A stretch of DNA of 64,000 nt from Auanema rhodensis (Eukaryota > Animalia > Nematoda): assembly GCA_964057225.1 (NCBI GenBank), contig OZ059900.1, forward strand, positions 14,074,001 through 14,138,000, given 5' to 3'. Position 1 is the stretch's first letter. The number at the start of each line of letters is the position of its first letter. Shown piece by piece: positions 2,909-53,071 of this stretch. A program made the position numbers and the translations under genes. The notes under the pieces were generated by a model. The model made no database searches. It was given only the letters and a program-made list of their open reading frames with translations, and had not been told where the DNA came from.

Positions 2909-3130
2909 GAATGACCATGAAAGGTAACAAAAGAAGATATTCGTGGTAAAATGAGAAATGCTAATCGCTAAAGAGAAAAAAGAGAGAACAATGTAGCACT
3001 CCTTGTTCTTGACCTTTTGTATGATATCAGTCTTTTTGTCCTAATAATGAAGGTTGGCTATACATTTTAGCCAGAAATATTGAAAAAGTTGTTAAAATAA
3101 TAAACAAAAAAAGGAAAAGATACTTTATTC
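2909..3130 (+). repeat. ~220-bp direct repeat, left copy (partner at 15146-15366), flanking the foreign island
   Basis: gaatgaccatgaaaggtaac...gaaaagatactttattc recurs almost identically at 15146-15366. A 58-bp sub-copy follows immediately at 3132-3189. Confidence 0.95.
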
Positions 3131-3223
3131 TAAGATATTCGTGGTAAAATGAGAAATGCTAATCGCTAAAGAGAAAAAAGAGAGAACAACGTAAGTAGTA
3201 TACAAAAAGTTGACGCTGGCGCA

Positions 3224-3357
3224 CCTTTTTTGCCCAAATGCGATTTTTGCAGATTTTCAACATTTTAAAAACATTTTTTTATTGAAAATCATACTTAATT
3301 TCCCCAAAATGTGTCTTTTTTGAAAAATGATCAAAATATGCCTGGCGCACCACTTAA
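3224..3357 (+). repeat. ~135-bp direct repeat, copy 1 (copy 2 at ~8692-8828), bracketing the Maverick remnant
   Basis: tttttgcccaaatgcgatttttgcag...tgg(c/t)gcaccactta is present at both positions with few mismatches. Confidence 0.9.
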
Positions 3358-3407
3358 AGCCCACTTTCAATTTTTCACTTGTATTTATTGTTTTTTTTTG
3401 CTATTAA

Positions 3408-3854
3408 ATGAGCTTTTCCCAAAATCTCATCCCTCTGACAAATATAGATCTCCTTGCTTTGGTAGACACATGAAAAATCAAGAATTTCCGCGGCATCTCT
3501 ATAAGAGACACTTTATCACCACAAGGAATTGGAAAAACGGAAATAGGTATTATAAATTTAGATTCTTCTGAAGGTAAAAGAACTCATTGGGTCTGCTATT
3601 CCAAAAATGGAAAAAATATTTATTTTTTCGATTCTTTTGGACTTGATCCACCATTAGAACTTCAAGAATATTTAAAAGGATGTACTTCTAGGAAGCTTGC
3701 TTACGCAAAAGAAAAAGATAAAAAACCAGTAATCGAATTATCAACATTTCAAATTCAAGAATATAATACACATCATTGTGGTTATTATTGTTTGTTACTT
3801 CTAAAATTAGTAGAATCTCATAACTTCAGAAATTCTATTTTATCCTTTCTATAA
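3408..3854 (+). pseudogene. Maverick adenain-like cysteine protease (PRO) with one in-frame stop
   Basis: Manual translation: MSFSQNLIPLTNIDLLALVDT*KIKNFRGI...INLDSSEGKRTHWVCY...YFFDSFGLDPP...FQIQEYNTHHCGYYCLLLL, containing the HW, FDSFG and Q..CG.YC adenain motifs. TGA at 3471-3473. Not in the ORF track. Confidence 0.9.
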
Positions 3855-4545
3855 ATAATAAATAAAAATTTGAGATAAAAGATTTGGTTTGATACCAACG
3901 TTCCCAACAGTCATTGTATTATGACTATCTTTAATGATATAACGTTTATGTTCACATGATAGTGAATCATTATTCAAAGCTACTTTATTCTGACATTGTG
4001 TGAAAATAGTGTGTTTAACACTCCTAATAGTATATTGAGTCTTTCTTACAACAGTCTTATTGAAAAGGCTGTGCTTATAATCATCGACAGTCAACTCATT
4101 CGTGACAACATTCTTTTTAACACCTTTACTTTTCTTAGTTTCATCACCATCTAGAGTCTTAAAAGCATATTGTTTAGGCTTTAGAGCAACTATTTCAGTT
4201 ATAATGTTTCCATTCAATTGATCTTTAAATTTTCCGACAACTTTCTTATTCTCTGTGCTACGAAGTACGTGATCTTCCGGATAATCACTGAAATCGAAAT
4301 GTCTTCGAAAATAGATATCTTTTTCCACATCTTTGTAAAAATCTTCAGTCTTGATGTCATATATGAGACTGTCAGTATCTTGGTAACATAACTCTACATT
4401 TCGATATTTCTTCTGCATAACATTGTAATGAAAGTCATGCATCAACCACTTACTCAGATCTAAAATAGCAAAACCTACATAAATAGGTTTATTAAGTACA
4501 ATATTTGTTTTCTCCATTTCTACAGCAGATAACTCTTTGTTATAC
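3849..4545 (-). pseudogene. C-terminal fragment of protein-primed B-family DNA polymerase (Maverick pPolB)
   Basis: Motifs KPIYVGFAILDLSK, YQDTDS (motif C), VGKFKD, ALKPKQY and KSKGV. The 5' part is missing. Confidence 0.95.
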
Positions 4546-4719
4546 GAACAGATGATGATAATGAATTTGAAAAAATTTCCTTTTTTTGTTTTGAAAATTT
4601 AATTTTTTATGCTAAATTTTAATGCTAATTTTTTTTGGCTTATTTTTTATTTCAAATATGGTTTTTTAAATTTTGAAAAAAAAATTTGAATATTTAATAT
4701 TATCCGAATGATTTTTTTT

Positions 4720-6920
4720 TGGTGTTTTAGACAAATTTAGTCGATTTTAGTCGTTTTTTAGTCGTTTTCTGTTTAACCGTGCCCAAGTATACCTTTCTTC
4801 CTCTATTATGCAAAACTCCATTCATTTTCCTTATAAGTTTAATAATACATATGCTCATAATAATCCTTATCAGACCAGGAGGTCAGAATAATATGCAGGA
4901 ATGCAAAGGCTATTTCTATAACAACCGATATTTGGACGACTCCAAATATGAAGAAATCGTTCATGGCCTTTACAGGAGTATCCGTGAACGATAACTTCGA
5001 AAGAAGATCGTTTCTGATGGATATGGTAGAACTTGAAGTGGGCGAACGGTAAGCGTGTATAGAAAAGGCACATAATATATTATATTTAAGGCACACGGCT
5101 GAATATCTGCAACAAGTGATTGAGAGCAGGTTCAACCACTTCGAGTTGGACACGGAGAAAATTAGCGCTATAGTAGCTGACGGTGGGGCTAATATAGTGA
5201 AAGCTATTAAATCTACATCTCTGAATTAGTAAGAAATGTTTAATTATTCTATCTAATCCTTCTGTTGCAGTGTCGCCTGCTCGGCGCATTTATTGGACAC
5301 GTTTGTTCAAGAACTTTATAAAATAAATTATCTAAAGGAGTGCATCGAAAAAATAACTTTTTTCATTGCATCCCTCCATCGCTCTCACATGATGTATGGG
5401 TTTTATAAGGAGTAAGCAAAAATCTACCAATTCAACTAAATTATTATTTTTGATGTTGTGAAAAGCACAACTTACCAAACTTCGATATAGCTGGGTTAGT
5501 CTGCACGAGATGGAACTCGGTTTTCATGGCGATCTGTGACGTTTTGAACACAATAGATGCTGTCCATGATACCATTCTGAAGTTCAAGCTGCTGCCACTA
5601 TCCGAAGAAGATGTGGAATTTCTGAGGCACATAAGGGAATTATTCCTTCCCATATTTGAGTCAACGTTGGAGCTGTGCAAAAAGAATTCAACACTTAGCT
5701 GCTTCCTGCCTGTTCTTTATCATATACGAAGGAATATGAAACAATTCTCCCTTAGAGAAACAATTCCGAGTAGAGTACGCTTTTTTTTGGAAAAAATGGA
5801 ATCGATCTTCAATAGAAGATTTTCCACCTATATGAAAGACAGGATTTTAAGGCAGCACACTTTTATGGATCCTCGGTAAGTGGTTTGAGAATAATTAATC
5901 ACTTCATTACATTTTTCAGCTTTTCTTTATCTAAGATTCTCGAAGATTATGAGTAGGCTGAAGTTGAGCGTGATATCACTCAACAGTTCTCTGTATCGCA
6001 GATTTCTAACGAGAACACTGACGTCGAACACCAACAGAGTAATAATATGTGGGATTGCGTTATGGCAGAACGGGGAACCACACAATCAAACGGTTTTGAT
6101 CTTAGAGTACGTTTGATTATAGTTTCCATCAAAAGGTTATAAACTTTCAGGAACAGATACTATCTTACAAAATATCAGTGAAGAGTATTACAAAGTGGAA
6201 AGAAGATCCCATAATTTATTGGAAAGATAGGAGACATGAATTACCTCTGCTCTCCGATATAGCGCTTCATTTCCTTGCAACCTCGTCTACATCCGTAGAC
6301 TCTGAGAGATTATTCAGGTAAGTAACAACTAAATAGAAATTGCTTATTCTTATTTAGTCAAGCTAGGATCATTTACGGTAACAAGAGGAGATGCAGGACA
6401 ACTGGCAGGGTTGCTAGATCACTGCTTTTAATCGCGGCACATAATCAACTAGGAAAAGAAAGCGATTGGTCAAAAAACTGGACTGGACGTTATAACTCAG
6501 GACATACTCAAGAGGAAGTGGTAGAATCGGAAGAAGATGAACAATATATGGAAGAAGACCCAATGGAAATTATAGATGTTACTAGTTGAAATGTTAATAA
6601 AGTAAAATAGTTAAAATTAAGTAAAATTAAATAAAGTAAAATTAAATATATGATAAAATTAAAATAAATATAAAGGAATGTTGAACGATCAATCGATAAA
6701 TAATAATTCGGCAGAAAATCAACGGCGACAAATTACGACTAATATTACGAACTAAACGACTAATTCCACTATTATTTTTAGTCGAAATTGGTCGATTAAT
6801 TAGTCGACTAAAATTATGAATAATGCGTGATTAGTTGATTAGCCGAATCCGACTAATCTTGAAAAACACTGGTTAGTCGTTAGCCGAAATTGTAAAAATC
6901 CGATTTTTTGCCCAACTATA
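4720..6920 (+). mobile_element. hAT-superfamily DNA transposon with a degenerate, intron-containing transposase (~4780-6589); boundaries approximate
   Basis: Motifs VADGGANIVKA, CSAHLLD (CxxH), CTRWNS, FMDPR and the dimerization domain YWKDRRHELPLLSDIALHFLATSSTSVDSERLFS. TAGTCG/CGACTA subterminal repeats cluster at 4738-4765 and 6735-6880. CAGTGTTTTTCAA on the - strand at 6859-6871. Stops and frameshifts are present. Confidence 0.9.
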
Positions 6921-7126
6921 AAGAAAGGGCTCTTTTCTGCAATTTTGCGTCTTATAACTTCTCAGACAAACTCAAAAAATCAAAAAAAAAATATTTTGAT
7001 TGTTAAAAAACGATAATGAATTCAGAAAATCTTAAAAATTTTAAAAATCATGTTTTAAAGTATTTTCTGAAGTCTCCGAAATTTTCATAAACTGCTAGAA
7101 GTATTCTTTCTTGAATTTTAGAAGTT

Positions 7127-7726
7127 TCACCACACCATGAGTTCATTCATTTTTATTTGACAGAAACCATCTTGATACTTATACTCTGACATATCTGCTA
7201 ACACATTAGATGGTCTACTTTGATTGAAGTGTGAATATACTTTAGTTTCAATGATGATACAATTCTCTTTGTAATATCTTTTGATTGTAAAGAAACTAGT
7301 AAATCGATTTGGATAATCTTTATTCACTTTATTATTTGTACTATATATTCCTTCTTTACCTTTCCCTAAACTTCCATATTCATATTTCTTATTTGCAATC
7401 CCTTCTCTACATTCTGCAACACTAATAGAACGATGATTCAATTCCTTTTCTACTAAGTGCTCATATCCTGAAAAATCTGTATACATTGATACTTCACTTA
7501 TTAATTTCTTACACAACTTAGCTTCACTTGAGTATTCAATTATGTTCGGTTTGAAGACTTCATAACTTACTACTTTTGGTTGACAATTTAATTGTCTATG
7601 ATAATTGCATTTGTGTAATTTCGGAAGTCTGAAGTATTGTACTGGTGCATTAAAAGTACAAATTATTGCAACTAAAATATCATAATGAGTAAATAAAAAA
7701 AAGAAATAGAATTGCAATAGATTCAT
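7127..7726 (-). pseudogene. N-terminal fragment of a viral-type envelope glycoprotein, probably the nematode Maverick class III fusogen
   Basis: Signal peptide followed by a Cys-patterned ectodomain (C...FRLP...C...KPN..EY...A.LC.K...YTDF.G...S..EC...STNN...YP...NC...GFC...W). Intronless, between pPolB and MCP, and truncated. Confidence 0.7.
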
Positions 7727-7770
7727 TTAATATTACAAAAAAAATATTTTAAATAAATACAAAAGTAAAA

Positions 7771-8295
7771 ATGGTAGAAGCAGTTGACAGAATTCTTATA
7801 GTTGACAATCCAATTATTCAAGATACTTCAATTCCAAAAGAAAATTTGATAAGCATATTTCCCTCTAGTGAAACAAGTCTTAATCAACATGGTGAAATTA
7901 ATTTTATAATTGAAACTTGTGATCAATATCTATTACTTCATAAATCTTACATCTACTTAGAAGCTTCCTTGACTGAATTAGACTCTAGTGCATTAAGTGA
8001 CACTGATGAAGTATCATTAATAAACAATGGACCTATGATCTTATTTGATATAGCAACTTACTCAATGGATGATATGCAAGTTGAAAATGTCATTGATCCT
8101 GGAAGAGCTTCACTATTAAATTTACTATTTACACTATTTACTTGGAAACTTGGAACTAAATATGATAAGATAAAATATCTTGTCATTGCATTTCAGGCTG
8201 CTAGAGATAATAATTATCTAAATGCTGCAAAGTTCGATAACTGTGGGCTTGAAGAAATCTACGTTGAACTCAATAGTGAAAGATATCCATATGAG
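7771..8295 (+). pseudogene. Maverick double-jelly-roll major capsid protein, internally deleted and 3'-truncated
   Basis: The N-terminal SLNQHGEINFII...SYIYLE...NNGPMILF...DPG region is joined directly to the C-proximal YLVIAFQ...FDNCGL..IYVELNSERYPY motif. Confidence 0.85.
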
Positions 8296-8341
8296 GATAA
8301 TAGGGTTAAAGTTGTCAGTATTTAAGATAACTTCTTTATGT

Positions 8342-8690
8342 TTAGGATTTCATATCTATTTCTGTAATCCAAGAATTGAACTTATCTGGATATCCATACA
8401 ACTTGACTAGTAGCTCTTTGACACCTTTTCTAGTTCTCTTCTTCAAAACTTTCTCGATTTTACACTCCTGAGTAACATTATCATAAAGTATGAGCTCTTC
8501 TTCAAAAAAATTTCCTTTAATTTCTTCAATTTCTTAATAGAATACATTGTAATCCCTTCTTTATTTGGGTGAACTTCAGAAATTTTGAATTGTTCAGTAC
8601 TCCAATTAGGCAGATATCCTTTATCAAAGATGGCTTTATATTTTGTGATACAAACAGTATCACCAATCTTGAAAGATGCAAACTTATTGC
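8342..8690 (-). pseudogene. C-terminal end of the Maverick retroviral-like integrase with chromodomain, frameshifted
   Basis: FKIGDTVCITKYKAIFDKGYLPNWSTEQF, then in another frame EEIKGNFFEEEL...KIEKVLKKRTRKGVKELLVKLYGYPDKFNSWI...*. Confidence 0.9.
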
Positions 8691-8691
8691 A

Positions 8692-8828
8692 ACCCTTTTT
8701 TTTTGCCCAAATGCGATTTTTGCAGATTTTCAACATTTTAAAAACATTTTTTTATTGAAAATCATACTTAATTTCCCCGAAATGTGTCATTTTTGAAAAT
8801 GATCAAAATATGTCTGGTGCACCACTTA
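8692..8828 (+). repeat. ~135-bp direct repeat, copy 2; truncates the integrase
   Basis: Near-identical to 3224-3357. Confidence 0.9.
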
Positions 8829-8905
8829 CCCACAGCCTAACAGAATTTGAAAAAAAAATTTTATTCTTAAACATTTAATAAATTAAGCCACATTACAAAA
8901 ACATA

Positions 8906-10373
8906 CTAAACAAAAGCTCCATATAATGTGCTTCCATCGATGACAGTCACAAGGCATGATTTCTTATTTGGTGGCGATCCTTCTTCTTTTCTCTCTTTTT
9001 CGAGTTCCTCCTAAACAAAATGTTATTAGATAAATTTGTATTAGCAGTAATGAATTGACATACCATATAAGCTTTTTCGAATTCAACAGCAGGAGAAATG
9101 ATAATTTTCGCGCTGAAAATTGCAGCTTCGGATATGGCTTCCTGGTCGTTCTTCAATGGCATCATCGTGCACCCATAATTCATCCCGATGAGGCCTTTTG
9201 CTCCCCAAACTCCACCACCTACAAGTTCCAATCAGAATTTAATTAACCAAAAAAAATATTTACCTGAGTCACCACACGAGCTTCGACTTGTTCCAAGAAT
9301 AAATGGACCCAATCCAGAAAAATAATGACGACGAACAGAATGGATCAAGCCCGGCAAATATGAAAGAGATCCCACGTCATTCCCGAACCCGGCTAATGTG
9401 AATGGTATCGACTCTTCAGCATTTGCGATTGAAGGCTTTCGCTAAAATACGAAAATTAACAACAAAATATAAAAAATGTTTCAAGAACTTACATCAACGA
9501 CATTGGATCTGCTTTTCAGCAAGATGAAATCGTATGCTTCAAAAATTTTCGCCACATACACATCAACGCCGGTTTGTTCGTCCACCTCTTTTTCTGCACT
9601 ATAAAGTAACAACAAAATATAAGAAATATGCTAAGAACTTACTGATATAATTTCAAATTATCGCCAATGTTGAAGCGACGGTGTGATCCATGTCTGAATG
9701 TGACGAAAAATCTTGGATGAACACAAATTGTAGTCGATTTCGTCTGTTCCATCAAGTAAAACATCCATTTAGTGAAACATTTTGCTGATGGTGCAGGTTT
9801 GTGCGGCACTAAAAAGAGATAATAAGTTTTCAATATGAATTCGAGTTAAATCTCACACTCAGGATGATACGGGCTCATCGAACGCTCGTTCAAAATTTGC
9901 TCCATCGGTGTTCTTGGACGAGAAGTAGTTGTGAATTGAGCTAAAATAAGTATTTTAAGTAAAAATCCTTTTCGTATAAAAGCATACAAATTAAAGCTGT
10001 TAATGAAAGATAATGAATTTAATCGAAAATCCTACAAACCTTCCACGTTAGCAGGAGTTGTTGGTCGGGGCGGCATTTTATCAGGCGATAGAACGACCCT
10101 CTCGCAATAATACTTGAATTGCTGAAAAACGAACAGTAAAATTAGCGTTCGGCAAATTAGCACTTCAAATTTCACAGATTTAAACTTTGCTAAAACATAA
10201 AAGCTCACCTGATCAAAGGCAATGAGGTTTTTCAGCATCTTCCACATTGCGGAATTTTCTCTTCCAACACATTTCGCATCTTCGATTGAAAGATTTTCCA
10301 GAACCTTTGCGCACTTTTCGCCGTCATCTGCATAGATCTGACACACTTTTCCGACAACTTCTTGATCAGCCAT
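8906..10373 (-). CDS. Intact 8-exon intracellular trypsin/chymotrypsin-fold serine protease (wosp-like Maverick cargo family)
   Basis: Splices into one open frame with canonical GT-AG introns: MADQEVV...FVTFRHGSH (His)...AYDFILLK (Asp)...GTSRSSCGDSG|GGVWG..GLIGM (Ser)...YGAFV*. A TTTCAG acceptor lies 8 nt before the ATG. No signal peptide. Confidence 0.85.
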
Positions 10374-10969
10374 TTTATCAACTGAAAGCAAACGATTTTT
10401 TGAAAAAACGTAAACAAACAACATTAGGAGTTCTCTCTCTTTTTCCTTCAGTTCTTTCCTTTGGTGTGACACCTTCACCCTGGTGACCTTCTTTTCTCTT
10501 CCTCACTTTGACTGAGCACAATCACACATTTGCCCCAGTTGAACTAAACACACGCGACGCAACACGCTAGCGCGTTGTGAAACAAAATGAAAGAAACCGG
10601 GAATGCAAAATAATTTCTGTCCAAAATTAGAACTATCGATGCTAATTTTGATGTGACAGCTATCGACCACAATTAGCTTTTTTTTAAATTGCTTCCCAAA
10701 CAATCTACCCAAGAAAAATCAAAACTCACAAATCCAATAGTCATCACATTTGACGAATTTCAGTTGATTTTAATATGAATTCCAAAAATTTGCATATGAG
10801 AGAATTATGTTCTCAAACCCTTGTTTGCATCATTTCCCACTCCCCGGTTTGCTTAACAACTTTTCCATCTTTCTCTCTTTTTCAATCGTGTAAATTTATT
10901 CATTTTCATTATAAACGTTCAACTAATTAACTAATAATAATCCTTATTTACTAATAAATGTCTGTTTAG

Positions 10970-11390
10970 ATGGCGATGGAATATTTGACGGCGCAAAAGC
11001 TCGAAGCCTCGCTCTTCACGACTTCCAAGCCCGACGCCGAGTTGCATTTGTGCGTGGTGCCAATCGATAAACGTCATGCTGCTTCTTTTTACCACGGTCC
11101 ACATTCGATACTCAAAGAAGGCGAGAAGATCATCTTGTATAACGTAACTGACTCGGATATTCAACGCGAGGTTTTTCTTTCCCAATTTTTTAAACTAGTT
11201 GCTTTTTAGGCAGTTGTGAAGACAATTTCTTATACCACCGATATTGTGGTGTTTGAGCTCGTCGACCAAATCTTTCCGTGTTATCCAAATGGATTTTATT
11301 CGATGTTTCGTGGTCAATCCTACAGGCAACTGGGCATAAATGAACAGCGCATGCCAAAATGGAAAGAAGGAACCGTATCGGAAATGTACA
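10970..11390 (+). CDS. Second, divergent trypsin-fold protease: N-terminal half only (exons 10970-11170 and 11210-11390)
   Basis: HAASFYHGPH (His motif parallel to TFRHGSH), TDIVVFEL (Asp) and YRQLG...WKEGTVS. No GDSG exon follows. Confidence 0.7.
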
Positions 11391-11445
11391 GTATGTCTAA
11401 TTTGCACTCACTCGTATTAGTATTGTTCTTTTCTCTTTTGTAGAA

Positions 11446-12382
11446 ATGAGCACATTAATTCATTCGAGGTTAGATTTAGAATGATTTTTTTTATTGCTCT
11501 ACTTTTTTTAGTTTGATGTATTGGCAAGGTATTTTATATATATTTTTAGAATGAACTTGCGTCAGGATCCTCGAATCCAAAAATTGCTCGAAAAGGCGAC
11601 GCTTGAAAGCCTTTTTAAATGCTATTTTCAACGTGTCTATGGAACGAAAGAAATCACGGAGATGGAAAATGCATTGAAAAAACGCTCTGGCCAACTACGA
11701 TAAGAAAGATTCCTTATACGAGGTTGGTTTATACATTTATTACAATGTTAATGTTACAATTTTTTTAGAAGCTTCTTGAGAATGATGAGAATGCAGCTGA
11801 ACCTCTTGTCAATGAGTGTCTTGATAGACTTTGTGAGGTAAGTGGTGTTTATAACAATTAAATCAGTATTTTAGTAGCTTTATTATATATTATTTCAGAA
11901 AACGTTTAATCGTGGACAGAACCATTCTCAGGATACTCTTCTGGTTCTCGCAAAGCTGTTCATTAAAGTAGGCGATCATCGACTTGCTTGTGAGCTCATT
12001 TGGTGCAGTGCATCGCTTGCAATACAAGGTAATTTTTATTTTTTAATATTTATGCAATGTATTCGTTTTAAGATTTTATCGCGGATCGGAAGCTGAAGGT
12101 TTCGTTCCACTCGCATAACGGTAAGAGACGCTTCGCGACGACGCTCTCGCGTGATATCGGACGTCGTTTTTCCGTGTTCGAAATGTAAGTGTACAAATTG
12201 TGGTCCATTTTCTGTGTTTTATTTGTTTCAGGTGTCACTCCTCATTCTACACAAATAGTCATGGTGCTCTCGACGTGAAGAATGCATTCGAAGATGCGAC
12301 AGAATTTATCCAAAAGCTTCGGGAGTTGCAAATAATTGATGAATTGAAGAAGGAATTGGAGAAGAAAAACTTCAATATTTAG
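11446..12382 (+). CDS. Spliced gene with a PaREP1-like (HEPN superfamily) domain and one apparent frameshift at or before the A6 run (11677-11682); possibly fused to the upstream protease fragment
   Basis: Exons 11444-11468, 11550-11722, 11769-11837, 11899-12028, 12073-12184 and 12232-12382 give LAKLFIKVGDHRLACELIWCSASLAIQ...FHSHNGKRRF...FSVFEMCHSSFYTN...DVKNAFEDATEFIQKLREL. This matches the PaREP1 pattern GD..QASEK.W.AA...SH..L...LH.NFYEN...V..FI.KL. Confidence 0.7.
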
Positions 12383-12705
12383 TTTGTCTTCTGTGATTCA
12401 CCTTTCCACTACTTCCCTTGATTGTATGCCTTCACTCGGCAAAAAAAAAATATTCAAAAAAAAAAAAATAATAGAATTTAAAATATATATTATTTAATAT
12501 GCTAGAAAATTCTCTAAAAATTACATAAAGATTAATTCTAATAATATATGTATATATAAAGATCTTTACTCATTAGAAAATGGATCCAATTTTCAAGGTT
12601 GATAATAACTAATCCCAGATCTTATATCTTCATATATTCGTTATATTATCCAAATATTTATTCGTTTTTATATATTTGTCTATATTAAATCTTTGCCTGG
12701 AAATA

Positions 12706-13617
12706 CAGTCGTGTGCGAAATAGTTGGGACAACCAAAAAGAGAGTCCAGACGGCGAAACGCAAACTACAAACCAATCAAAAAATTTAATTTAGTTTTCAG
12801 GTTGAAGTAGCAACATATTGATTAAAAAACAAGTGACAATGATGAAAAATGAAATTTTCGAAATTTATATAAGTTTAAAACTGTATATAATGCTTTTTTG
12901 GTTGTTTTAAATGATGAAAAATTAAAATTTATAATTTAAGATGGTTAGGGGCAAGAAAACTACTCCAGAACTTCGAAGCATCATTATTGAAAAGAAAAAT
13001 GAAGGGCTGACCGTACGAAAGATTAGTGAGATGCTGGGAATCCCGAAAAGTACGATTCAGAATGTATGGACCAAACAAAACCAAGCTGAAACCAGGGGAA
13101 GAAAAAAAAAGACAACAGTAGGACAAGATTCTTTAATTATTAAACTCGTAGAAAGACATCCGGATATGACGTCGATAGAGTTAAGCCAGCATGTCCTACG
13201 AATGTTCAAGATTCATCTACATCCTTCTAATATACGACGAAGATTGTTGTCGAAAAACCTAAGAGCTCGTGTTCCAGCTCGGAAGCCTCTGATATTCTTA
13301 CGAATCCGAATAAGAATATAACGGAGGACCACTGTTTGAACGTCCAATTTCATAACAGCATACGGCAGGAAGCAGGTTCGTAAGATGTCATCCTGCCTTC
13401 AACACGATAAAGTGGCCCAACTTCGGAAGCGCTAAAACAGCCCCAAATCATGACGTTGCCGCCACCATGCTTCACCGTAGGTCGCATGAATTTAGGGTTG
13501 AATCGCTGGTTTGGTGGTCTTCTTACGAATCCTGGTCCGTCGTTTCCAAATAAGCAAAACTTGCTTTCATCGGTGAATATAACGGAGGACCACTGTTCGA
13601 ACGTCCAATTCAGATGC
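12706..13617. mobile_element. Rearranged Tc1/mariner element: left TIR plus HTH half (+), with the DDE segment inverted (-)
   Basis: TA|CAGTCGTGTGCGAAA end at 12704. ORF 12941-13321 encodes the paired HTH and RVPARKPL linker. The reverse complement of ~13410-13617 reads [20 protein letters not shown]...[17 protein letters not shown]. Confidence 0.9.
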
Positions 13618-14683
13618 GCAAATATGAAAGAGATCCCACGTCATTCCCGAACCCGGCTAATGTGAATGGTATCGACTCTTCAGCATTTGCGATTGAAGGC
13701 TTTCGCTAAAATACGCAAATTAACAACAAAATATAAAAAATGTTTCAAGAACTTACATCAACGACATTGGATCTGCTTTTCAGCAAGATGAAATCGTATG
13801 CTTCAAAAATTTTCGCCACATACACATCAACGCCGGTTTGTTCGTCCACCTCTTTTTCTGCACTATAAATTAACAACAAAATATAAGAAATATGTTAAGA
13901 ACTTACTGATATAATTTCAAATTATCGCCAATGTTGAAGCGACGGTGTGATCCATATCTGAATGTGACGAAAAATCTTGGATGAACACAAATTGCAGTCG
14001 ATTTCGTCTGTTCCATCATGTAAAACATCCATTTAGTGAAACATTTAGCTGATGGTGCAGGTTCGTGCGGCACTAAAAAGAGATAATAAGTTTTCAATAT
14101 GAATTCGAGTTAAATCTCACACTCAGGATGATACGGGCTCATCGAACGCTCGTTCAAAATTTGCTCCAATGGTGTTCCTGGACGAGAAGGAGTTGTGAAT
14201 TGAGCTAAAATAAGTATTTTAAGTAAAAATCCTTTTCGTATAAAAACATACAAATTAAAGCTGTTAATGAAAGATAGTGAATTTAATCGAAAATCATACA
14301 AACCTTCCACGTTAGCAGGAGTTGTTGGTCGGGGCGGCATTTTATCAGGCGATAGAACGACCCTCTCGCAATAATACTTGAATTGCTGAAAAACGAACAG
14401 TAAAATTAGCGTTCGGCGAATTTGCACTTCAAATTTCACAGATTTAAACTTTGCTAAAACATGAAAGCTGACCTGATCAAAGGCAATGAGGTTTTTCAGC
14501 ATCTTCCAGATTGAGGAATTTTCTCTTCCAACACATTTCGCATCTTCCTTGAAAGATTTTCCAGAACCTTTGCGCACTTTTCGCCGTCATCTGCATAGAT
14601 CTGACACACTTTTTCGACAACTTCTTGATCCGCCATTTTGTCAACTGAAAGCAAACGATTTTTTAAAAAAACGTAAACAAACA
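13618..14683 (-). pseudogene. Recent partial duplicate of the serine protease gene (copy of 9354-10420); lacks the catalytic Ser exons and is frameshifted in exon 1
   Basis: Near-identical exons and introns. catcttccttgaaag versus catcttcgattgaaag (net -1 bp). Cut at the Tc1 fragment. Confidence 0.92.
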
Positions 14684-15145
14684 TATTAGATTAATTCGGT
14701 CAAGAAAGAGGGAAAGTAGGAAAAGTTGTTAACAAACCCAAACTTAAGGAGAAAATAACTAATATTACGGCGCTAATGAGGGTTAATTAACTAAAAGAAC
14801 CTAAATTTTATGACCACAAAAAGAAAATTTTCACAATAAGGGACGGACAATTCGGGAACAAACAGCGAGAGTAAATGAAAATGATTTTTCTTTTTTTTCC
14901 TTTTTTTTCCCTTTTATCAAAATTAGCATTGATGGTGCTAGTTTTTATATTGAAATCCTTTAGCCTTCCCGTTTTCCTTAACTACCTAACTAAAACTTAT
15001 GGAGAAAATAACTCATTCTCTTTCACTCTAGCCCAACGCTTTGCGTGCACTTGGTTCAACTGCGAAATTGAGTCAACCCAGCAAATATTCATCTCTCTTT
15101 TGAAGTCAAATGGAAGCAAAAAATTACTTTTTAAAGAATCACCAT

Positions 15146-15366
15146 GAATGACCATGAAAGGTAACAAAAGAAGATTTTCTGGTAAAATGAGAAATGCTAA
15201 TCGCTAAAGAGAAAAAAGAGAGAACAATGTAGCACTCCTTGTTCTTGACCTTTTGTATGATATCAGTCTTTTTGTCCTAATAATGAAGGTTGGCTATACA
15301 TTTTAGCCAGAAATATTGAAAAAGTTGTTAAAATAATAAACAAAAAAAGGAAAAGATACTTTATTC
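15146..15366 (+). repeat. ~220-bp direct repeat, right copy
   Basis: Near-identical to 2909-3130. Confidence 0.95.
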
Positions 15367-43390: not shown

Positions 43391-44119
43391 CTCTAAAAAA
43401 TTACAATAAGAAAAAAATTTGAAAAATTAATCGATAATCGACCGAGTTGACAAATGGATTGAATAGTATTCTCAACTGTCTTTAACACACAGTACACAGA
43501 GCAGTATATCTGACTGTGATAGCAATATCAATCAAATGATTTTGGAGCATCAACATTACTTTTATCAACCACTTTGATAAGGTTTAAATACTTAGTAATG
43601 ATTATAGTGACAGGCAGTCAAAAGAAGAAGAAGTTTATTAGAAACTGTCAATCATATCTATTCAACAACTATAAATATTATAAAAAGTGAATTTGATTTT
43701 TTTTTTCACAAAACTTTTCTCAAACATTTTGTATATATTGAAATCAAACAAACATATCACTTACATACGAAATGTTTGAAACTGAGATTTCGCGCGATAA
43801 TTGAATATGAACTTCTTTATCATTTGGAATTTGTAAATAAAAATATAACTCACTAAATGAGTTAAAATTTTGATAACTGCAAACTTCTCAGCTTATCTTT
43901 AAAACCATTTGTAGCTGCGAATTGTGAGCATTTGTTTTATAATAACATACAATGATTAGTATTCTCATGTTTTTAATATTAATTATTGTTTATAAACATC
44001 TTTTTACTAATAAAAACTATTCATTGTTCATATTAGTAACTTTGAAATTGCGTATTTCAGATTACAAAGACTTTGTTTTATTATTTAAATTATTGGAATA
44101 ATAGTAATACAATAATTAT

Positions 44120-45509
44120 TTATAAATTTTCATCATCAAATAGTCTTTTTAATAGTGTACCACCCATACTTGGAAATTTATACTGAATTGTTGATGTTGC
44201 CCAACCCATAGGAATTCGAATTGATTCCAAATTCTATAAAGCATATTAAAATTAAAAGAATTATTACAAAATTCTTCATCTACCTCAAATATTACTGGTC
44301 GGAACCGTAAATTTATACAGTTTCGCTGAAAGAATTCAGCTTCCATCATTCTAATAATATTGAGATTCAAATTTATAAACATATCGGAAGAGCTAGCTAC
44401 TTCGTGTAGTCGAACAAACGAAGGCGTATAACATACAACAATTTGCAAAGCCTAAACATCCATACTTGATAAAATTCCGTGTACGATAGCAACCTCATTG
44501 AAGAGTGTTTGAAGCGATGACACTATGTTTTCTTCTGAAATATATTGGGCAATATCAATTATTGGCCTAACAACATGTCGTCTCTGATTATTTCTGTAAA
44601 ATATTGTGAGATTATCGTACTCATGTCTTGAGTTTACTTCAAATTTTTGAGTAACCACCGATATTCTTTACGTTCCTCTCCTGTTGTTTCATAATGAACT
44701 ACGAGAACAACTGAAAAAACTTGAAATTTTTAAAGAAAACTCAAAAATCATTTTAAAAGCATTTTGCTTTTAGAATTGACTCATAATGCTTAAAATTGCA
44801 TACATTGATTAGGTATTCTCAATCTTGGTGAATCATCACTGATTGTTTGATCTAGAAAATAATCAAATTTACAATCACCACTATTTCACCTACTCCTAGA
44901 ATAACTGCCATCACATAACTGACCAACATCAAATAATTCTTTTAAGGAATATAATGTATCGACGCGATTCATTCTTTTTAGTAAACGAATAAAGTTATTA
45001 AGATTTTCATGAGAATATTTTTTGCTTAATAAATCAAACGGACTAATATCTCGCTGCATCATCTTGAATAGATCAATACTCAATATTTGATTGGAGCGAG
45101 ATGTTTCTTACCATGATAGCATCACTGCTCATACCATATTCACAAGCAATGTATTCCCAATTTTTCATAGAACCAAATGCTTTTATGTTCAAATGAGCAG
45201 ACAACATTTCTTTTGCCGTGGTAGTTAAGTCACCTATTCTGAATGTAAACATATACTTCTCAAATCATGTTGAAGAGGAGTACAATAAATGTGAGGAAAC
45301 GTTGAAGACCATTTGGCCTAAAGTGTACTTTGGACCAAACTTTAATGTTCCCAAAAAACCTGGAGCTTTGCCAATTATATTCGAAGGCTTAATTACAATT
45401 AATAGATACTGTATGAACTTGAATACTAAACTTTTTTCTCATCATCTGAATCTATTTCTATCGTAACATTACATAGACTATTATCGTCAATCATATCGGC
45501 TTCATCCAT
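44120..45509 (-). CDS. actl-1: Death-domain + SEFIR adaptor (Act1/CIKS-like), copy A
   Basis: Death domain LSAHLN...KNWEYIACEYGM...ISPFDLL...FIRLLKRMNRVDTL. SEFIR motifs QIVVCYTPSF...IIRMMEAEFFQRNCINLRFRPVIF...IPMGWATSTIQYKFP..TLLKRLF. The 5' exon structure is tentative. Confidence 0.75.
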
Positions 45510-45781
45510 TCTTCAACTACTATGTCTACAAGTTTTAAACTTTTTTTTAAATATATATAACAGATTTGAAACAACTGTAGTTCAAACATATGACACAGAA
45601 TATCATATTTATTAATCACAACGCCTTTCTCTATGAGTACTTTTAATAGAATATTGCATTTTTAACATCATAATGACTACATGTGGAATTATTATTTTAT
45701 AATTATTTAGAAATAACTTTTTCAAGGTATTTTGAATTGATTTAGCAACACATTTTTGTTATGAAATACGTTTTGAAAACG

Positions 45782-47608
45782 TTATTCGTGAATTGAATTT
45801 GTAGATTCTCCCTGTGAACCGCAGCCAGTCTGAAAAGAAAATATTTGCTGACACCCATTCCTAGTTTGATGTTTTTGTTTCTCTAGAATATGTATACCTG
45901 TGAAAAAGAAGGCTGAAGAGTCAACGAATGAATCCCTATTGTGTGAAAGAGACGTCTAATCTTAGGAACAGCTTCTTCATATGCAGCAGCGTTACAGAAT
46001 TCTACTTGAGCTGTGGCTAAGTGCCGGTTTGCAACAAGTGTCCATACTGTTATTTCTTGTACATTAGCAACGCCTTGTACCTGTAATTTGTAAGATTGGA
46101 AAACATCTAATCTACGATTGAAAATACCTTCGTCATATCTTTTTTTAAAGCTTCATTGTTAATGAATTGTGGAGGTCGCCCAAGAATAATATCTGCAGTT
46201 TCTTTTACTAAACGGTAAGCAGAGTACGATATCAATAAAACCAACACCAAACTACAACAACGTTGGTAAGTCTGCTATTCAAGAAAACAAGAAATTCATA
46301 CCTCAAGCCAGGATCAAAGTAATTAAGCGCATCTCCGAAAAAGTTTGCAAAGAAGAGTGCAGCAGCAGCAGTAGCAATAACAAATACAGAACCAATAGCG
46401 TCTGACACAATATGCAGAAAAACACCTTTCATATTCAAATTTTCCTGTTCTGCAAATTGTTTGATAAATGCCGATAAATGGGTTTTACTAGTACCTTCCT
46501 TTTTCTTGTTGGCTAGTTGGGCTGCATCTTCTCCATTATCCGAGTCATATTCATCAGAATTCTCGTTTTCATTCATAATCAAACGTAATGCAAGATGCTA
46601 AAGCCAAATATATTGTAATAAACATTACGAAAAGCACTCACATTATGAGAACAGCTACTCAAATGACTCATCGAGCGAACAGGCTTAGTTTTGATTCGAC
46701 TTTCCTTAAGATTATCATGCTCGCACAATTCTTCATTCTCTGCTGAATCAGCGGCTTTCTGTTTAATAAGTTAAATTTGTTTAAGTTTGTTGGTAAAACC
46801 TTTTTGGAGTGATTATGGCTGTGTCCATGGCTGTGTCCATGGCTGTGCCCATGGCTGTGTTTATGGCTGTGCCCATGGCTGTGTCCATGACCGTGCCCGC
46901 TACCACCGTGGCTATGAGCATGTGTTCCATGGAATAAGAACAATCCAAAAACATTAATGAAAAAACCAATAAGTCCAACAGTTATAACCTGAATTTTGAA
47001 ATAAACGACGTTATTTAGAAAATCTCTCGAACGTGAGTAGGATTAGCCATTTTTTTAGGATTAATTATTCTTCCCACAGCCTCCAGTGTTATGGTAAAGC
47101 AAATAGATAAAAGAAAAACTCCATTCACAAGTGCTCCAAAAACTTCTGCTCTTACCCACCCAAAACCATTCTTCTTTGATTTCATTCGAGAAATCTAAAT
47201 ATAATGAAAAGTCTTAGAGAAAATAGTCAGCCATGACTAGTGAAGTAAACCTTTAAGCAAACTAATGCAATGCACAGAGCCATTACATCCGAAAGCATAT
47301 GATATGAATCAGCTAAAAGAGCAACTGAGCGATTTACTAGTCCAAACAGTAATTCAACCAAAAAAAATAAAAAAGTTATTACAATGAAAAAGATAATTTT
47401 CGAGCTGTTTTTCCTGTAAGAAACCGTATTACATAAAAAAGTTTCTATTTTGTTACTGGTGAGTAGTTTCCTCATGATGATCATCTTCTTCTTGTTCATT
47501 TTGTTTCAAACGAGCTAATAAGCGTTGTTCTTTTTTTTGATTACTATGAATTTGGCACGCAGTGGAATTTTCTGTGTTGCCCACATTTTCCATTTCACTT
47601 TCCATCAT
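45782..47608 (-). CDS. cdf-1: Cation diffusion facilitator, ZnT1-like zinc exporter, copy A (long His loop)
   Basis: ALLADSYHMLSD, FGWVRAEVFGALVNGVFL, HGHS-repeat loop, LNMKGVFLHIVSDAIGSV, FHTIGIHSLTLQP. Splices in frame. Confidence 0.9.
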
Positions 47609-47765
47609 ACAGAAGAATTCTAAACATATTTCACTAAATATTCTTTTTATTCAAACAAATAAAATATATTTTGACAATTAGTTATAACCTTGTGAGAAAA
47701 AAGGTTAAAATTTCAATTCAGTTTTACAAGAAAACACGAAAAAAAGATAAATTGTGTTCGCACAT

Positions 47766-47768
<3 letters not shown>

Positions 47769-47814
<46 letters not shown>
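47769..47814. repeat. (TA)n microsatellite at the inner end of the left palindrome arm; a shorter counterpart lies at ~48373-48385
   Basis: Seen directly in the sequence. Confidence 0.95.
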
Positions 47815-47817
<3 letters not shown>

Positions 47818-48545
47818 TTATTTGATATTTTAAAAAATAGAAGGAAAACTTTTAGCTAAACGAATGACTTCGCCGTTATCAATCAATGAAACAGAAGAGC
47901 CTGTGGTATATCTAATAAAAAAAGATGCTAGTGTGAAAGAAATGGTCCCATATATGTATCAGCTGGTGATAGCGAAAATGGCAAATAACAGAAAGAGCAA
48001 AAGAAGAGAGACGGAAGAAATAATTTGTGAACATATTTATCTAGAATTTATAATATTATATAGATGGTAAATTCAAGATTATTATCTTTTTTCAAACCCA
48101 TTTGTTATTTCATCAGCGGTAGAAATGATTATAACTGTTTTCATGTTTTTTTCATTGACTTCTCTTAATTCGTAATACATATGACTATTTTTTAATTTCC
48201 AGAACGCAATTATATTTGTGCCGTGTAGACGAAAATGTCGCAGACAAAGCCGCGTTCTTTCTCTGATCGCATAAGCTGTTTACTTTAGAATGCGATAGGA
48301 AACCAAAACGACTAGAGAAAGTTATCGATTACTTTTCACGCTGAGCTTCTATTTTTTTTATCTCAATTATGAATATATATATATAGTCATGTGCGAACAC
48401 AATTTATCTTTTTTTCGTGTTTTCTTGTAAAACTGAATTGAAATTTTAACCTTTTTTCTCACAAGATTATAACTAATTGTCAAAATATATTTTATTTGTT
48501 TGAATAAAAAGAATATTTAGTGAAATATGTTTAGAATTCTTCTGT

Positions 48546-50328
48546 ATGATGGAAAGTGAAATGGAAAATGTGGGCAACACAGAAAATTCCACTGCGTGCC
48601 AAATTCATAGTAATCAAAAAAAAGAACAACGCTTATTAGCTCGTTTGAAACAAAATGAACAAGAAGAAGATGATCATCATGAGGAAACTACTCACCAGTA
48701 ACAAAATAAAAAACTTTTTTATGTAATACGGTTTCTTACAGGAAAAACAGCTTGAAAATTATCGTTCTTGTTGTAATAACTTTTTTATTTTTTTTGGTTG
48801 AATTAGTGTTTGGACTACTAAATCGCTCAGTTGCTCTTTTGGCTGATTCATATCATATGCTTTCGGATGTAATGGCTCTGTGCATCGCATTAGTTTGCTT
48901 AAAGGTTTACTTCACTAGTCATGGCTGACTATTTTCTCTAAGACTTTTCATTATATTTAGATTTCTCGAATGAAATCAAAGAAGAACGGTTTTGGGTGGG
49001 TAAGAGCAGAAGTTTTTGGAGCACTTGTGAATGGAGTTTTTCTTTTATCTATTTGCTTTACCATAACATTGGAGTCTGTGGGAAGAATAATTAATCCTAA
49101 AAAAATGGCTAATCCTACTCACGTTCGAGAGTTTTTCTAAATAACGTCGTTTATTTTAAAATTCAGGTCTTGATTGTTGGAGTTATTGGTTTATTGATTA
49201 ATGTTGTCGGAATATCCTTATTTCATGGAGCACATGGTCACAGTCACGGTGGTAGCGGGCACGGTCATGGACACAGCCATGGACACAGCCATAATCACTC
49301 CAAAAAGGTTTTAACAATAAACTTAAACGAATGTAACTTGTTAATCAGGAAGCCGCTGATTCAGCAGAGAATGAAGAGTTGTGCGAGCATGATAATATTG
49401 AGGAAAGTCTAATGAAAACTAGACCTGTACGCTCAATGAGCCATTTGAGTAGCGCTTGTTCTCATAATGTGAGTGCTTTTCGTAAAGTTTATTACAATAT
49501 ATTTGGCTTTAGCATCTTGCATTACGTTTGATTATGAATGAAAACGAGAATTCTGATGAATATGACTCGGATAATGGAGAAGATGCAGCCCAACTAGCCA
49601 ACAAGAAAAAGGAAGGTACTAGTAAAACTCATTTATCGGCATTTATCAAACAATTTGCAGAACAGGAAAATTTGAATATGAAAGGTGTTTTTCTGCATAT
49701 TGTGTCAGACGCTATTGGTTCTGTATTTGTTATTGCTACTGCTGCTGCTGCACTCTTCTTTGCAAACTTTTTCGGAGATGCGCTTAATTACTTTGATCCT
49801 GGCTTGAGGTATGAATTTCTTGTTTTCTTGAATAGCAGACTTACCAACGTTGTTGTAGTTTGGTGTTGGTTTTATTGATATCGTACTCTGCTTACCGTTT
49901 AGTAAAAGAAACTGCAGATATTATTCTTGGGCGACCTCCACAATTCATTAACAATGAAGCTTTAAAAAAAGATATGACAAAGGTATTTTCAATCGTAGAT
50001 TAGATGTTTTCCAATCTTACAAATTACAGGTACAAGGCGTTGCTAATGTACAAGAAATAACAGTATGGACACTTGTTGCAAACCGGCACTTAGCCACAGC
50101 TCAAGTAGAATTCTGTAACGCTGCTGCATATGAAGAAGCTGTTCCTAAGATTAGACGTCTCTTTCACACAATAGGGATTCATTCGTTGACTCTTCAGCCT
50201 TCTTTTTCACAGGTATACATATTCTAGAGAAACAAAAACATCAAACTAGGAATGGGTGTCAGCAAATATTTTCTTTTCAGACTGGCTGCGGTTCACAGGG
50301 AGAATCTACAAATTCAATTCACGAATAA
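48546..50328 (+). CDS. cdf-1: Cation diffusion facilitator, ZnT1-like zinc exporter, copy B (short His loop)
   Basis: MMESEMENV...DDHHEETTHQ|KNSLKII...ADSYHMLSD...HIVSDAIGS...IHE*. The coding indels seen relative to copy A are multiples of 3. Confidence 0.9.
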
Positions 50329-50600
50329 CGTTTTCAAAACGTATTTCATAACGAAAATGTGTTGCTAAATCAATTCAAAATACCTTGAAAAAGTTATTTC
50401 TAAATAATTATAAAATAATAATTCCACATGTAGTCATTATGATGTTAAAAATGCAATATTCTATTAAAAGTACTCATAGAGAAAGGCGTTGTGATTAATA
50501 AATATGATATTCTGTGTCATATGTTTGAACTACAGTTGTTTCAAATCTGTTATATATATTTAAAAAAAAGTTTAAAACTTGTAGACATAGTAGTTGAAGA

Positions 50601-51990
50601 ATGGATGAAGCCGATATGATTGACGATAATAGTCTATGTAATGTTACGATAGAAATAGATTCAGATGATGAGAAAAAAGTTTAGTATTCAAGTTCATACA
50701 GTATCTATTAATTGTAATTAAGCCTTCGAATATAATTGGCAAAGCTCCAGGTTTTTTGGGAACATTAAAGTTTGGTCCACAGTACACTTTAGGCCAAATG
50801 GTCTTCAACGTTTCCTCACATTTATTGTACTCCTCTTCAACATGATTTGAGAAGTATATGTTTACATTCAGAATAGGTGACTTAACTACCACGGCAAAAG
50901 AAATGTTGTCTGCTCATTTGAACATAAAAGCATTTGGTTCTATGAAAAATTGGGAATACATTGCTTGTGAATATGGTATGAGCAGTGATGCTATCATGGT
51001 AAGAAACATCTCGCTCCAATCAAATATTGAGTATTGATCTATTCAAGATGATGCAGCGAGATATTAGTCCGTTTGATTTATTAAGCAAAAAATATTCTCA
51101 TGAAAATCTTAATAACTTTATTCGTTTACTAAAAAGAATGAATCGCGTCGATACATTATATTCCTTAAAAGAATTATTTGATGTTGGTCAGTTATGTGAT
51201 GGCAGTTATTCTAGGAGTAGGTGAAATAGTGGTGATTGTAAATTTGATTATTTTCTAGATCAAACAATCAGTGATGATTCACCAAGATTGAGAATACCTA
51301 ATCAATGTATGCAATTTTAAGCATTATGAGTCAATTCTAAAAGCAAAATGCTTTTAATATGATTTTTGAGTTTTCTTTAGAAATTTCAAGTTTTTTCAGT
51401 TGTTCTCGTAGTTCATTATGAAACAACAGGAGAGGAGCGTAAAGAATATCGGTGGTTACTCAAAAATTTGAAGTAAACTCAAGACATGAGTACGATAATC
51501 TCACAATATTTTACAGAAATAATCAGAGACGACATGTTGTTAGGCCAATAATTGATATTGCCCAATATATTTCAGAAGAAAACATAGTATCATCGCTTCA
51601 AACACTCTTCAATGAGGTTGCTATCGTACACGGAATTTTATCAAGTATGGATGTTTAGGCTTTGCAAATTGTTGTATGTTATACGCCTTCGTTTGTTCGA
51701 CTACACGAAGTAGCTAGCTCTTCCGATATGTTTATAAATTTGAATCTCAATATTATTAGAATGATGGAAGCTGAATTCTTTCAGCGAAACTGTATAAATT
51801 TACGGTTCCGACCAGTAATATTTGAGGTAGATGAAGAATTTTGTAATAATTCTTTTAATTTTAATATGCTTTATAGAATTTGGAATCAATTCGAATTCCT
51901 ATGGGTTGGGCAACATCAACAATTCAGTATAAATTTCCAAGTATGGGTGGTACACTATTAAAAAGACTATTTGATGATGAAAATTTATAA
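50601..51990 (+). CDS. actl-1: Death-domain + SEFIR adaptor (Act1/CIKS-like), copy B
   Basis: Inverted, near-identical copy of 44120-45509. Confidence 0.75.
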
Positions 51991-53071
51991 ATAATTATTG
52001 TATTACTATTATTCCAATAATTTAAATAATAAAACAAAGTCTTTGTAATCTGAAATACGCAATTTCAAAGTTACTAATATGAACAATGAATAGTTTTTAT
52101 TAGTAAAAAGATGTTTATAAACAATAATTAATATTAAAAAACATGAGAATACTAATCATTGTATGTTATTATAAAACAAATGCTCACAATTCGCAGCTAC
52201 AAATGGTTTTAAAGATAAGCTGAGAAATTTGCAATTATCAAAATTTTTCTTATTCAAGTTTAAATCAAGTTCAAACACGTGCGCAGGGTGCAGATTAATA
52301 ATAGAACGAGTTCTTTGTAGAAATATACGATCCAATGTTCTAAGTAGAATAATTGTTTTGTTTCTGCTGTTTGCAGTTAAAAGTTTGGTCATTTAGCTTT
52401 CGAACAAAAATTCGTTTTGAAATTTTTTCGCAAGAAATTGAAAATCAAATCAGAATAGAATCAATGTAATTAAAAGTTTTGGAATGATTTGAACATGTTT
52501 TCAATCAGAAGTCTAGCTTCATTTGGTTGAAAAATGTTTTTTTTTTCAGTTTGTGAAACCTTTATATCCAAAAAAGTCTCAGCATCTCATACTTTAAATT
52601 TAAATTGAAAAACTTAAATATTATTCCAATTTCTAATTTTTTAAATTTAAGATTTGGCAATTTAAGATTAAGATTTAAGTTGATCTCTAAGTCTTAATAA
52701 AGTTAAAAAAACATAAAACTTAGTTGGAGAAATATTGAAATATACAAACAAAAGCAATCAAACGTGAAGTGAATCGTATTGTAGTTTAGTTAATATTTTA
52801 TCTCAGATTCTTTGTTATAAATACGAAGAGTATTAATGCTTTCAGTAATCATGAATATTAAAACTAAAATAACGGTCAAATATCCACTCTACGAATAATT
52901 AATAACCTATGGGTAGGTATAGATTACATCTTTTCATTGAAATATGATCTTAAAGCATCGACCGTATTGAAATATATTAATATTAGTGCTGCTGAATTTC
53001 GAATATATTGTGCTATTTGCTGTTTCCTCTATAATCGAATTTAAAGCTTTTGGCTTCTAAACTACCAACAT

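Follow-up and report, generated by a model that had tools for sequence, protein, structure and literature searches.

The PaREP1-like gene in the window (by which we mean the whole 64-kb stretch of DNA that was analysed) is best explained as a five-exon nematode gene for a PaREP1-type HEPN domain, which would have arisen through an old transfer followed by intron gain and of which the window copy is likely to be a young pseudogene; taken as a whole, we regard this explanation as quite probable. The window is nematode DNA, with a GC content of ~31%, short introns with TTTCAG acceptors, and genes for V-ATPase B, a kinase and an acyltransferase. Exons 2 to 5 of the gene lie on the forward strand (11769-11837, 11899-12028, 12073-12184 and 12232-12382; 69, 130, 112 and 151 nt, respectively) and, when joined, form a 462-nt open frame for a 153-aa product that ends with the TAG codon at 12380-12382. 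The introns between them (61, 44 and 47 nt) have the donors GTAAGT, GTAATT and GTAAGT and the acceptors TTTCAG, TTTAAG and TTTCAG. The HEPN domain starts at ~11908 in exon 3, which encodes the GD-x-R-x-A-x-E-x-x-W helix, continues through exon 4 with the conserved Ser-His pair (HSHNG), and ends at ~12358 in exon 5, where CHSSFYTN corresponds to the HEPN histidine motif.

These are the four spliced exons proposed in the initial annotation, and they are real: the splice sites are clean, the peptide quoted there is obtained exactly from 11899-12028, 12073-12184 and 12232-12382, and homologues have the same exon lengths. The gene extent given there was, however, correct for exons 2 to 5 only, as exon 1 (11551-11722, forward strand) was overlooked, and hence also the frameshift within it; the gene model comprises five exons. 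Exon 1, identified by tblastn and by DNA alignment with four homologues, encodes the N-terminal helical region, opens with an ATG directly 3' of an acceptor-like ttttag site, and is 172 nt long compared to 171 nt in the homologues. No second copy of the PaREP1-type gene was found elsewhere in the 64-kb window by tblastn with P0001, a Caenorhabditis sp. 36 homologue.

A protein search with the 153-aa product retrieved annotated proteins of 210 aa, among them P0001 and P0002 of Caenorhabditis sp. 36 (81% and 79% identity) and homologues from Pristionchus pacificus and Aphelenchoides besseyi (63% identity each), with further matches in Mesorhabditis, Auanema and C. tropicalis. When proteins were fitted to their own loci, exon lengths of 171, 69, 130, 112 and 151 nt were obtained at two loci of Caenorhabditis sp. 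36 and in P. pacificus. In A. besseyi, the last three exons are the same, all introns but intron 1 match, and the first two exons can be seen once the annotators' read-through is set aside. Given annotated 210-aa homologues with 63-81% identity and the same exon lengths, the splice model of exons 2 to 5 is not a product of chance. At the position of intron 1, the A. besseyi locus (L004, 10061-10105) contains a 45-nt in-frame stretch of the form AT...AG that is read as coding and may be a non-canonical or exonised intron.

The family is patchily distributed across clade IV and clade V nematodes. According to the source names, its members within Caenorhabditis come from C. remanei, C. brenneri, C. 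angaria, C. tropicalis, C. briggsae (fragments) and Caenorhabditis sp. 36, and those outside this genus from Auanema, Mesorhabditis spiculigera, M. belari, P. pacificus, A. besseyi and Ditylenchus dipsaci; Meloidogyne hapla has N-terminal fragments only. The C. remanei protein P0013 is a fragment, and fragments occur in C. tropicalis as well. A profile built from eight family members (A2) was searched against 1.84 billion representative proteins and yielded 48 hits, and among those whose source was looked up (all but ~20), there was neither a C. elegans protein nor a protein of a non-nematode eukaryote. A search that started from the Ditylenchus protein P0055 and was aimed at a second nematode lineage or C. 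elegans members returned Ditylenchus paralogues only, and no helicase-like domain was detected in the family members scanned with Pfam. Two giant Thr/Ala/Gly-rich repeat proteins (P0039 and P0040) were discarded as spurious repeat matches, with profile positions 116-139 matched eleven times. In Auanema sp. JU1783 (L010, 8816-15256), four family members are arranged in tandem on one strand, a local expansion. The C. tropicalis protein P0012 (532 aa), labelled 'SEC7 domain-containing' at the source, consists of the family domain (residues 6-207) and a Gln/Pro-rich low-complexity tail of ~320 residues.

That the window gene encodes a PaREP1-type HEPN domain, spliced and in a nematode, as had been read by eye from the PaREP1 consensus, is supported by profile, alignment and structural comparisons. 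Single window exons, which are too short for this, gave no match to Pfam, and the 153-aa product matched PaREP1 only (15.3 bits, E = 0.019; residues 37-101 on profile positions 9-63 of 115). The proposed HMMER comparison with Pfam PaREP1 was thus favourable in that no other family was matched, but the score lies below the gathering threshold of PF05942 (24.4 bits), which is passed by no family member; 3 of the 8 homologues show similarly weak matches. Weak Pfam matches to ExsD, RNA_helicase, AAA and others were disregarded, each being found in one member only. The A2 profile, searched against the 1.84 billion proteins, also retrieves P0043, P0049, P0050, P0054 and P0056 (E between 2.7 × 10−8 and 9.6 × 10−4), which by themselves score 42-81 bits on Pfam PaREP1 and are genuine PaREP1 proteins; the genes around P0049 are archaeal and those around P0054 bacterial. 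Comparison of the nematode alignment with these PaREP1 proteins by hhalign gave a probability of 99.15% (E = 3.7 × 10−19) over 118 columns, corresponding to residues 84-203. The nematode and prokaryotic rows share D106, R108, A110, E112, W115, S137-H138, H163, F166, Y167 and N169 (P0001 numbering), all of which are found in the window copy, and both family histidines, E112 and R108 are nearly invariant from archaea to nematodes. The canonical Rx4-6H motif, which the initial annotation had noted as not cleanly present, is absent: R154/R155 are located 7-8 residues before H163 and vary among homologues. According to Anantharaman et al. 2013 (PMC3710099), the missing motif is a hallmark of PaREP1/8 as a whole, which 'lacks R but H is conserved'; its absence here therefore supports PaREP1 membership.

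Structural modelling is in agreement with this assignment. A helical bundle at the C-terminus is predicted with confidence in the AlphaFold model that was computed from nematode sequences alone, and the AF2 model with a deeper alignment reaches a pLDDT of 91.5 over the whole protein, with block means of 93-98 over residues 91-210 and helices at 91-103, 107-128, 138-168 and 173-192. The C-terminal domain is predicted to form a four-helix up-and-down bundle, as in HEPN domains. The Foldseek comparison suggested in the initial annotation returned the PaREP1 structure 2q00_A as the top PDB match for both models (probability 1.0, TM 0.73-0.77 on the target, rmsd 2.9-3.8, 116-117 columns), followed by the HEPN structures 1ufb, 2hsb, 1o3u, 1wol and 3mfn; the top set has probabilities of 0.99-1.0 and TM of 0.65-0.77 on the target, with E-values that are only modest (0.03-0.08). 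PaREP1 sequences were included in the alignment of the second model and not in that of the first, which gave the same ranking. The structure 2q00 is listed as a PaREP1/8 structure by Anantharaman et al. 2013 (PMC3710099), and the PaREP1 profile matches the 2jpu/2q00 sequence at 3.1 × 10−7; a PDB sequence search with the nematode-only profile gave no match, 2q00 being reached through the fold search and the mixed profile only.

Like PaREP1/PaREP8 (PF05942; HEPN-T; 2q00/2jpu, Sulfolobus solfataricus P95883), the nematode proteins have a predicted four-helix HEPN fold, no Arg of Rx4-6H, and the signature GD-x-[RVA]-x-A-x-E-x-x-W, a His after helix 2 and H-x-x-F-Y-x-[ND]. They differ from PaREP1/PaREP8 in scoring below the Pfam cut-off, in an extra conserved N-terminal helical region of ~83 residues and in their five exons, and their genes are not found in operons with MNT or restriction-type genes. 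Prokaryotic HEPN-MNT toxin-antitoxin and stand-alone HEPN proteins (2hsb, 1ufb, 1o3u, 1wol) are likewise small domains with the same fold (TM 0.65-0.71 on the target), and mostly have both Rx4-6H and a partner nucleotidyltransferase gene. In contrast to HEPN-MNT modules, no gene recurs as a partner beside the nematode genes, and none of their neighbours is conserved in a way that would point to an antitoxin-like partner.

The idea of a transfer is not new, having already been proposed for Caenorhabditis by Anantharaman et al. 2013 (PMC3710099), who describe a PaREP1/8 representative that entered Caenorhabditis, underwent expansion in C. elegans and C. remanei, and is possibly inactive; a crenarchaeal origin was inferred for these proteins, some of which are fused to an inactive Vasa/LAF-1-like ATPase domain. 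Literature searches with the family locus tags and with HEPN combined with nematode or Caenorhabditis found nothing beyond that paper. The present family, which may overlap with these Caenorhabditis expansions, resembles them in its PaREP1/8-type HEPN domain, inferred prokaryotic origin, lineage-specific expansions and doubtful catalysis. However, the published set is limited to the genus Caenorhabditis, whereas the present family reaches Pristionchus, Auanema, Mesorhabditis, Aphelenchoides, Ditylenchus and Meloidogyne; unlike that set, it includes no C. elegans member among the hits looked up and no helicase-like domain among the members scanned. What is new is a defined 210-aa, five-exon family that is not called by Pfam, its range over two nematode clades, the shared intron positions and the constraint on its sequence. 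The family (~210 aa, five exons, unannotated wherever found) joins a short list of prokaryotic conflict-system domains in animals, and the PaREP1-type HEPN domain, whose known nematode range had been the genus Caenorhabditis, is now found in two major clades, in free-living as well as plant-parasitic species. Tractable species with intact orthologues, P. pacificus among them, would permit a functional test of a PaREP1 protein which, to our knowledge, would be the first.

The ~210-aa protein is predicted to be all-helical, with residues 1-83 as a nematode-specific helical extension and residues 84-203 as the PaREP1-type HEPN domain (HEPN-T clade of Anantharaman et al.). By analogy with other HEPN domains, intact members may dimerise, and R108, E112, H138, H163 and N169 (P0001 numbering) may line an RNA- or nucleotide-binding cleft, to which the N-terminal helices could add a partner-binding or regulatory part. 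The intact protein might then bind RNA or be a weak RNase that needs no metal, with some role in genome conflict or RNA surveillance. Given the lack of Rx4-6H, and because we know of no PaREP1 protein that has been assayed, RNase activity of the family is conjecture, and we consider an active RNA-directed enzyme to be a serious possibility that falls somewhat short of probable.

In an alternative that we find tenable but rather doubtful, the HEPN domain is catalytically dead and functions purely as an adaptor that binds protein or RNA, following a suggestion made for several Caenorhabditis versions by Anantharaman et al. (2013, PMC3710099), who also proposed a receptor-like role. The missing Rx4-6H motif, with the nearest arginines too far from H163 and not conserved, is in line with such an adaptor. 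Near-invariance of both histidines, E112 and R108 from archaea to nematodes under purifying selection, however, fits a working site better than a scaffold. Judging from substitution rates, the family is under purifying selection (dN/dS ~0.2); comparison of L002 (Caenorhabditis sp. 36) with either of the other two copies (window and L001) gave dN/dS of 0.18-0.20. On the most far-reaching interpretation, which we put forward as speculation and think unlikely to hold in full, this is a nematode-wide family that has gone unrecognised by current domain libraries and has an RNA-directed effector or sensor role in genome conflict. It would have come from prokaryotes prior to the clade IV/V split, at a far earlier date and with a wider spread than in the published account, which is confined to Caenorhabditis. 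If this is true, duplication, tandem expansion (Auanema), fast paralogues (L001) and frequent decay (C. briggsae, C. remanei, C. tropicalis and the window copy) would amount to an arms race.

The window gene and ~65 nt on each side show 90% nucleotide identity to L001 of Caenorhabditis sp. 36 over 964 nt, introns included, and the wider flanks are unalignable (blastn). As the introns align with L001 while the wider flanks do not, the window copy is, by all appearances of its sequence, a paralogue from a recent DNA-level duplication that retained the introns, and neither an orthologous locus nor a retrocopy. The part shared with L001 continues past the stop codon into a 3' flank (12383-12443, forward strand) that marks the end of the duplicated unit. 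On the 5' side, a proximal promoter or 5' region (11486-11550, forward strand), which ends in the ttttag just 5' of the ATG, is conserved with the paralogues, and a distal upstream element on the same strand (10483-10577; 90.5% blastn identity to L001 and 81% to L002) is probably a piece of the distal promoter. The two are separated by an insertion of ~0.75-0.8 kb (10578-11400, 3' edge approximate) that, according to the alignment, is missing from both Caenorhabditis sp. 36 paralogues; similarity to the paralogues returns weakly at ~11331 and clearly at 11409. Part of the insertion (10847-10969) matches dispersed repeats in L001, and no terminal inverted repeats were found around the insertion or around the Tc1 remnants downstream.

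Compared to all four homologues, the forward-strand DNA alignment shows a single extra base in exon 1 of the window copy, located within 11675-11681 at the edge of a run of six A, so that reading from the ATG stops at TAA 11701-11703. The frameshift is also evident in tblastn, where P0001 residues 1-43 match 11551-11679 and residues 43-57 match 11678-11722 in another frame. The window copy has no downstream in-frame Met able to yield the whole domain; apart from the exon 1 base and the upstream insertion, it is intact. In the computations, the frameshift was masked as X/NNN. Because of the extra base and the ~0.8-kb upstream insertion, the window copy is most likely a young pseudogene.

The divergence between the window copy and L001 is low at synonymous sites (dS = 0.19), with dN/dS = 0.46, and when L002 and L003 serve as outgroups, the branch of the intact L001 has 19 amino-acid changes and the window branch 10. 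Since the protein sequence has thus changed less in the window copy than in L001, the frameshift is either very recent or an assembly error. We regard it as rather unlikely that the window copy is an intact, expressed gene whose extra base reflects a sequencing or assembly error: the good splice sites throughout, exons 2 to 5 free of in-frame stops, the complete set of signature residues, the more conservative evolution than that of L001 and the position of the extra base beside a run of six A would all fit such a gene, but the upstream region carries the ~0.8-kb insertion in addition, no annotated protein identical to the window copy is present in the protein collection, and the dN/dS of 0.46 relative to L001 is raised. 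The window copy is, then, probably a dead duplicate and in itself of little importance. In the comparison of L001 (6833-7667) with the window (11551-12382), the introns are 94.4% identical and the exons 90.2%. The divergence hints at diversifying selection on L001, with small numbers (z ~1.85), and L001 may be evolving fast.

With regard to the origin of the family, the collection contains at least 1955 members of PaREP1 proper, most of them archaeal and some bacterial, together with three Ditylenchus proteins. In the maximum-likelihood tree, which is unrooted and includes only 24 prokaryotic sequences, the 210-aa family is recovered as a single clade (100/99), three intronless ORFs of short metagenome contigs join the Ditylenchus PaREP1 proteins (96/82), and the 24 prokaryotic samples are all found on one side of a branch (96/85). 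The phylogeny called for in the initial annotation is compatible with one old transfer into nematodes, but, with such rooting and sampling, does not establish the donor or the number of transfers. Two of the metagenome contigs (L008, 275-718; L009, 438-881) carry intronless PaREP1 ORFs (P0043 and relatives) on short AT-rich sequences, beside a weakly ankyrin-like ORF; grouping with the Ditylenchus PaREP1 proteins in the tree, these ORFs may bridge the prokaryotic and nematode versions.

An ancient transfer from a prokaryote to nematodes with subsequent intron gain, as the initial annotation suggested, is plausible and is the best explanation, as the profile search, run exhaustively over 1.84 billion representatives, returned no identifiable eukaryotes other than nematodes. 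The most economical history that fits, on an unrooted and thinly sampled tree, is one old transfer that predates the separation of clades IV and V, as would the subsequent gain of four introns. Under this scenario, the family would derive from prokaryotic PaREP1 genes and would have been kept under purifying selection in some lineages and expanded locally or decayed in others. Vertical descent of an ancient eukaryotic gene that was lost almost everywhere, with no prokaryotic transfer involved, appears improbable: intron positions are common to clade IV and clade V nematodes, and the tree does not pin down a donor lineage, both of which such descent would accommodate, but the search reached no identifiable eukaryotes other than nematodes, while the at least 1955 members of PaREP1 are mostly archaeal or bacterial.

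Least credible of all is that a Maverick/Polinton or other mobile element carries the gene as cargo and spreads it horizontally among nematodes: this would explain the patchy distribution with its many fragments and the high cross-species identity, and a double-jelly-roll capsid-like ORF (7771-8325, Pfam 3 × 10−9) and a polB-like ORF lie 3-7 kb upstream, with Tc1 remnants and nested direct repeats flanking the window gene, but a test for Maverick cargo found only these DJR-like and polB-like fragments, the neighbours at four other loci (L002, L003 of P. pacificus, L004 of A. besseyi and L010 of Auanema) are ordinary host genes, with none of an element within 10 kb, DNA similarity between species ends at the gene borders, and the saturation of synonymous sites between Pristionchus and Caenorhabditis (pS = 0.81) speaks against recent transfer. 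The argument for horizontal acquisition that had been drawn from a 'mobile island' therefore fails, as the relatives at those four loci lie among ordinary host genes and the window copy was duplicated recently (dS = 0.19 to its paralogue). The mobile surroundings explain the place of the duplicate in a decaying, repeat-rich region, not the origin of the family, and are incidental.

Several features of the surrounding DNA were recorded. The Maverick/Polinton-like remnants extend over 3849-8325 and include, besides the capsid-like ORF (7771-8325, PF21738), a reverse-strand polB-like ORF (3849-4517) with a YQDTDS motif recognised by eye and no Pfam hit. Tc1/mariner remnants downstream of the gene (12941-13487) consist of an HTH part (12941-13321, forward strand) and a DDE-region fragment (13350-13487, reverse strand), the latter recognised by eye only. 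Direct repeats enclose the region 2909-15366 as three nested pairs, 2909-3130 with 15146-15366 (222 nt, 99%), 3226-3356 with 8699-8828 (131 nt, 96%), and 9354-10420 with 13618-14683 (1067 nt, 97.5%), the last of which brackets the HEPN gene and the Tc1 remnants. Further downstream, a palindrome (43970-52140), which may reflect either a genuine inverted duplication or an error of the assembly, has outer arms of 2684 nt (43970-46653 and 49457-52140) that are 100% complementary and inner arms at 94-98%, and bears two mirror copies of a gene for a His-rich cation-efflux (CDF) transporter.
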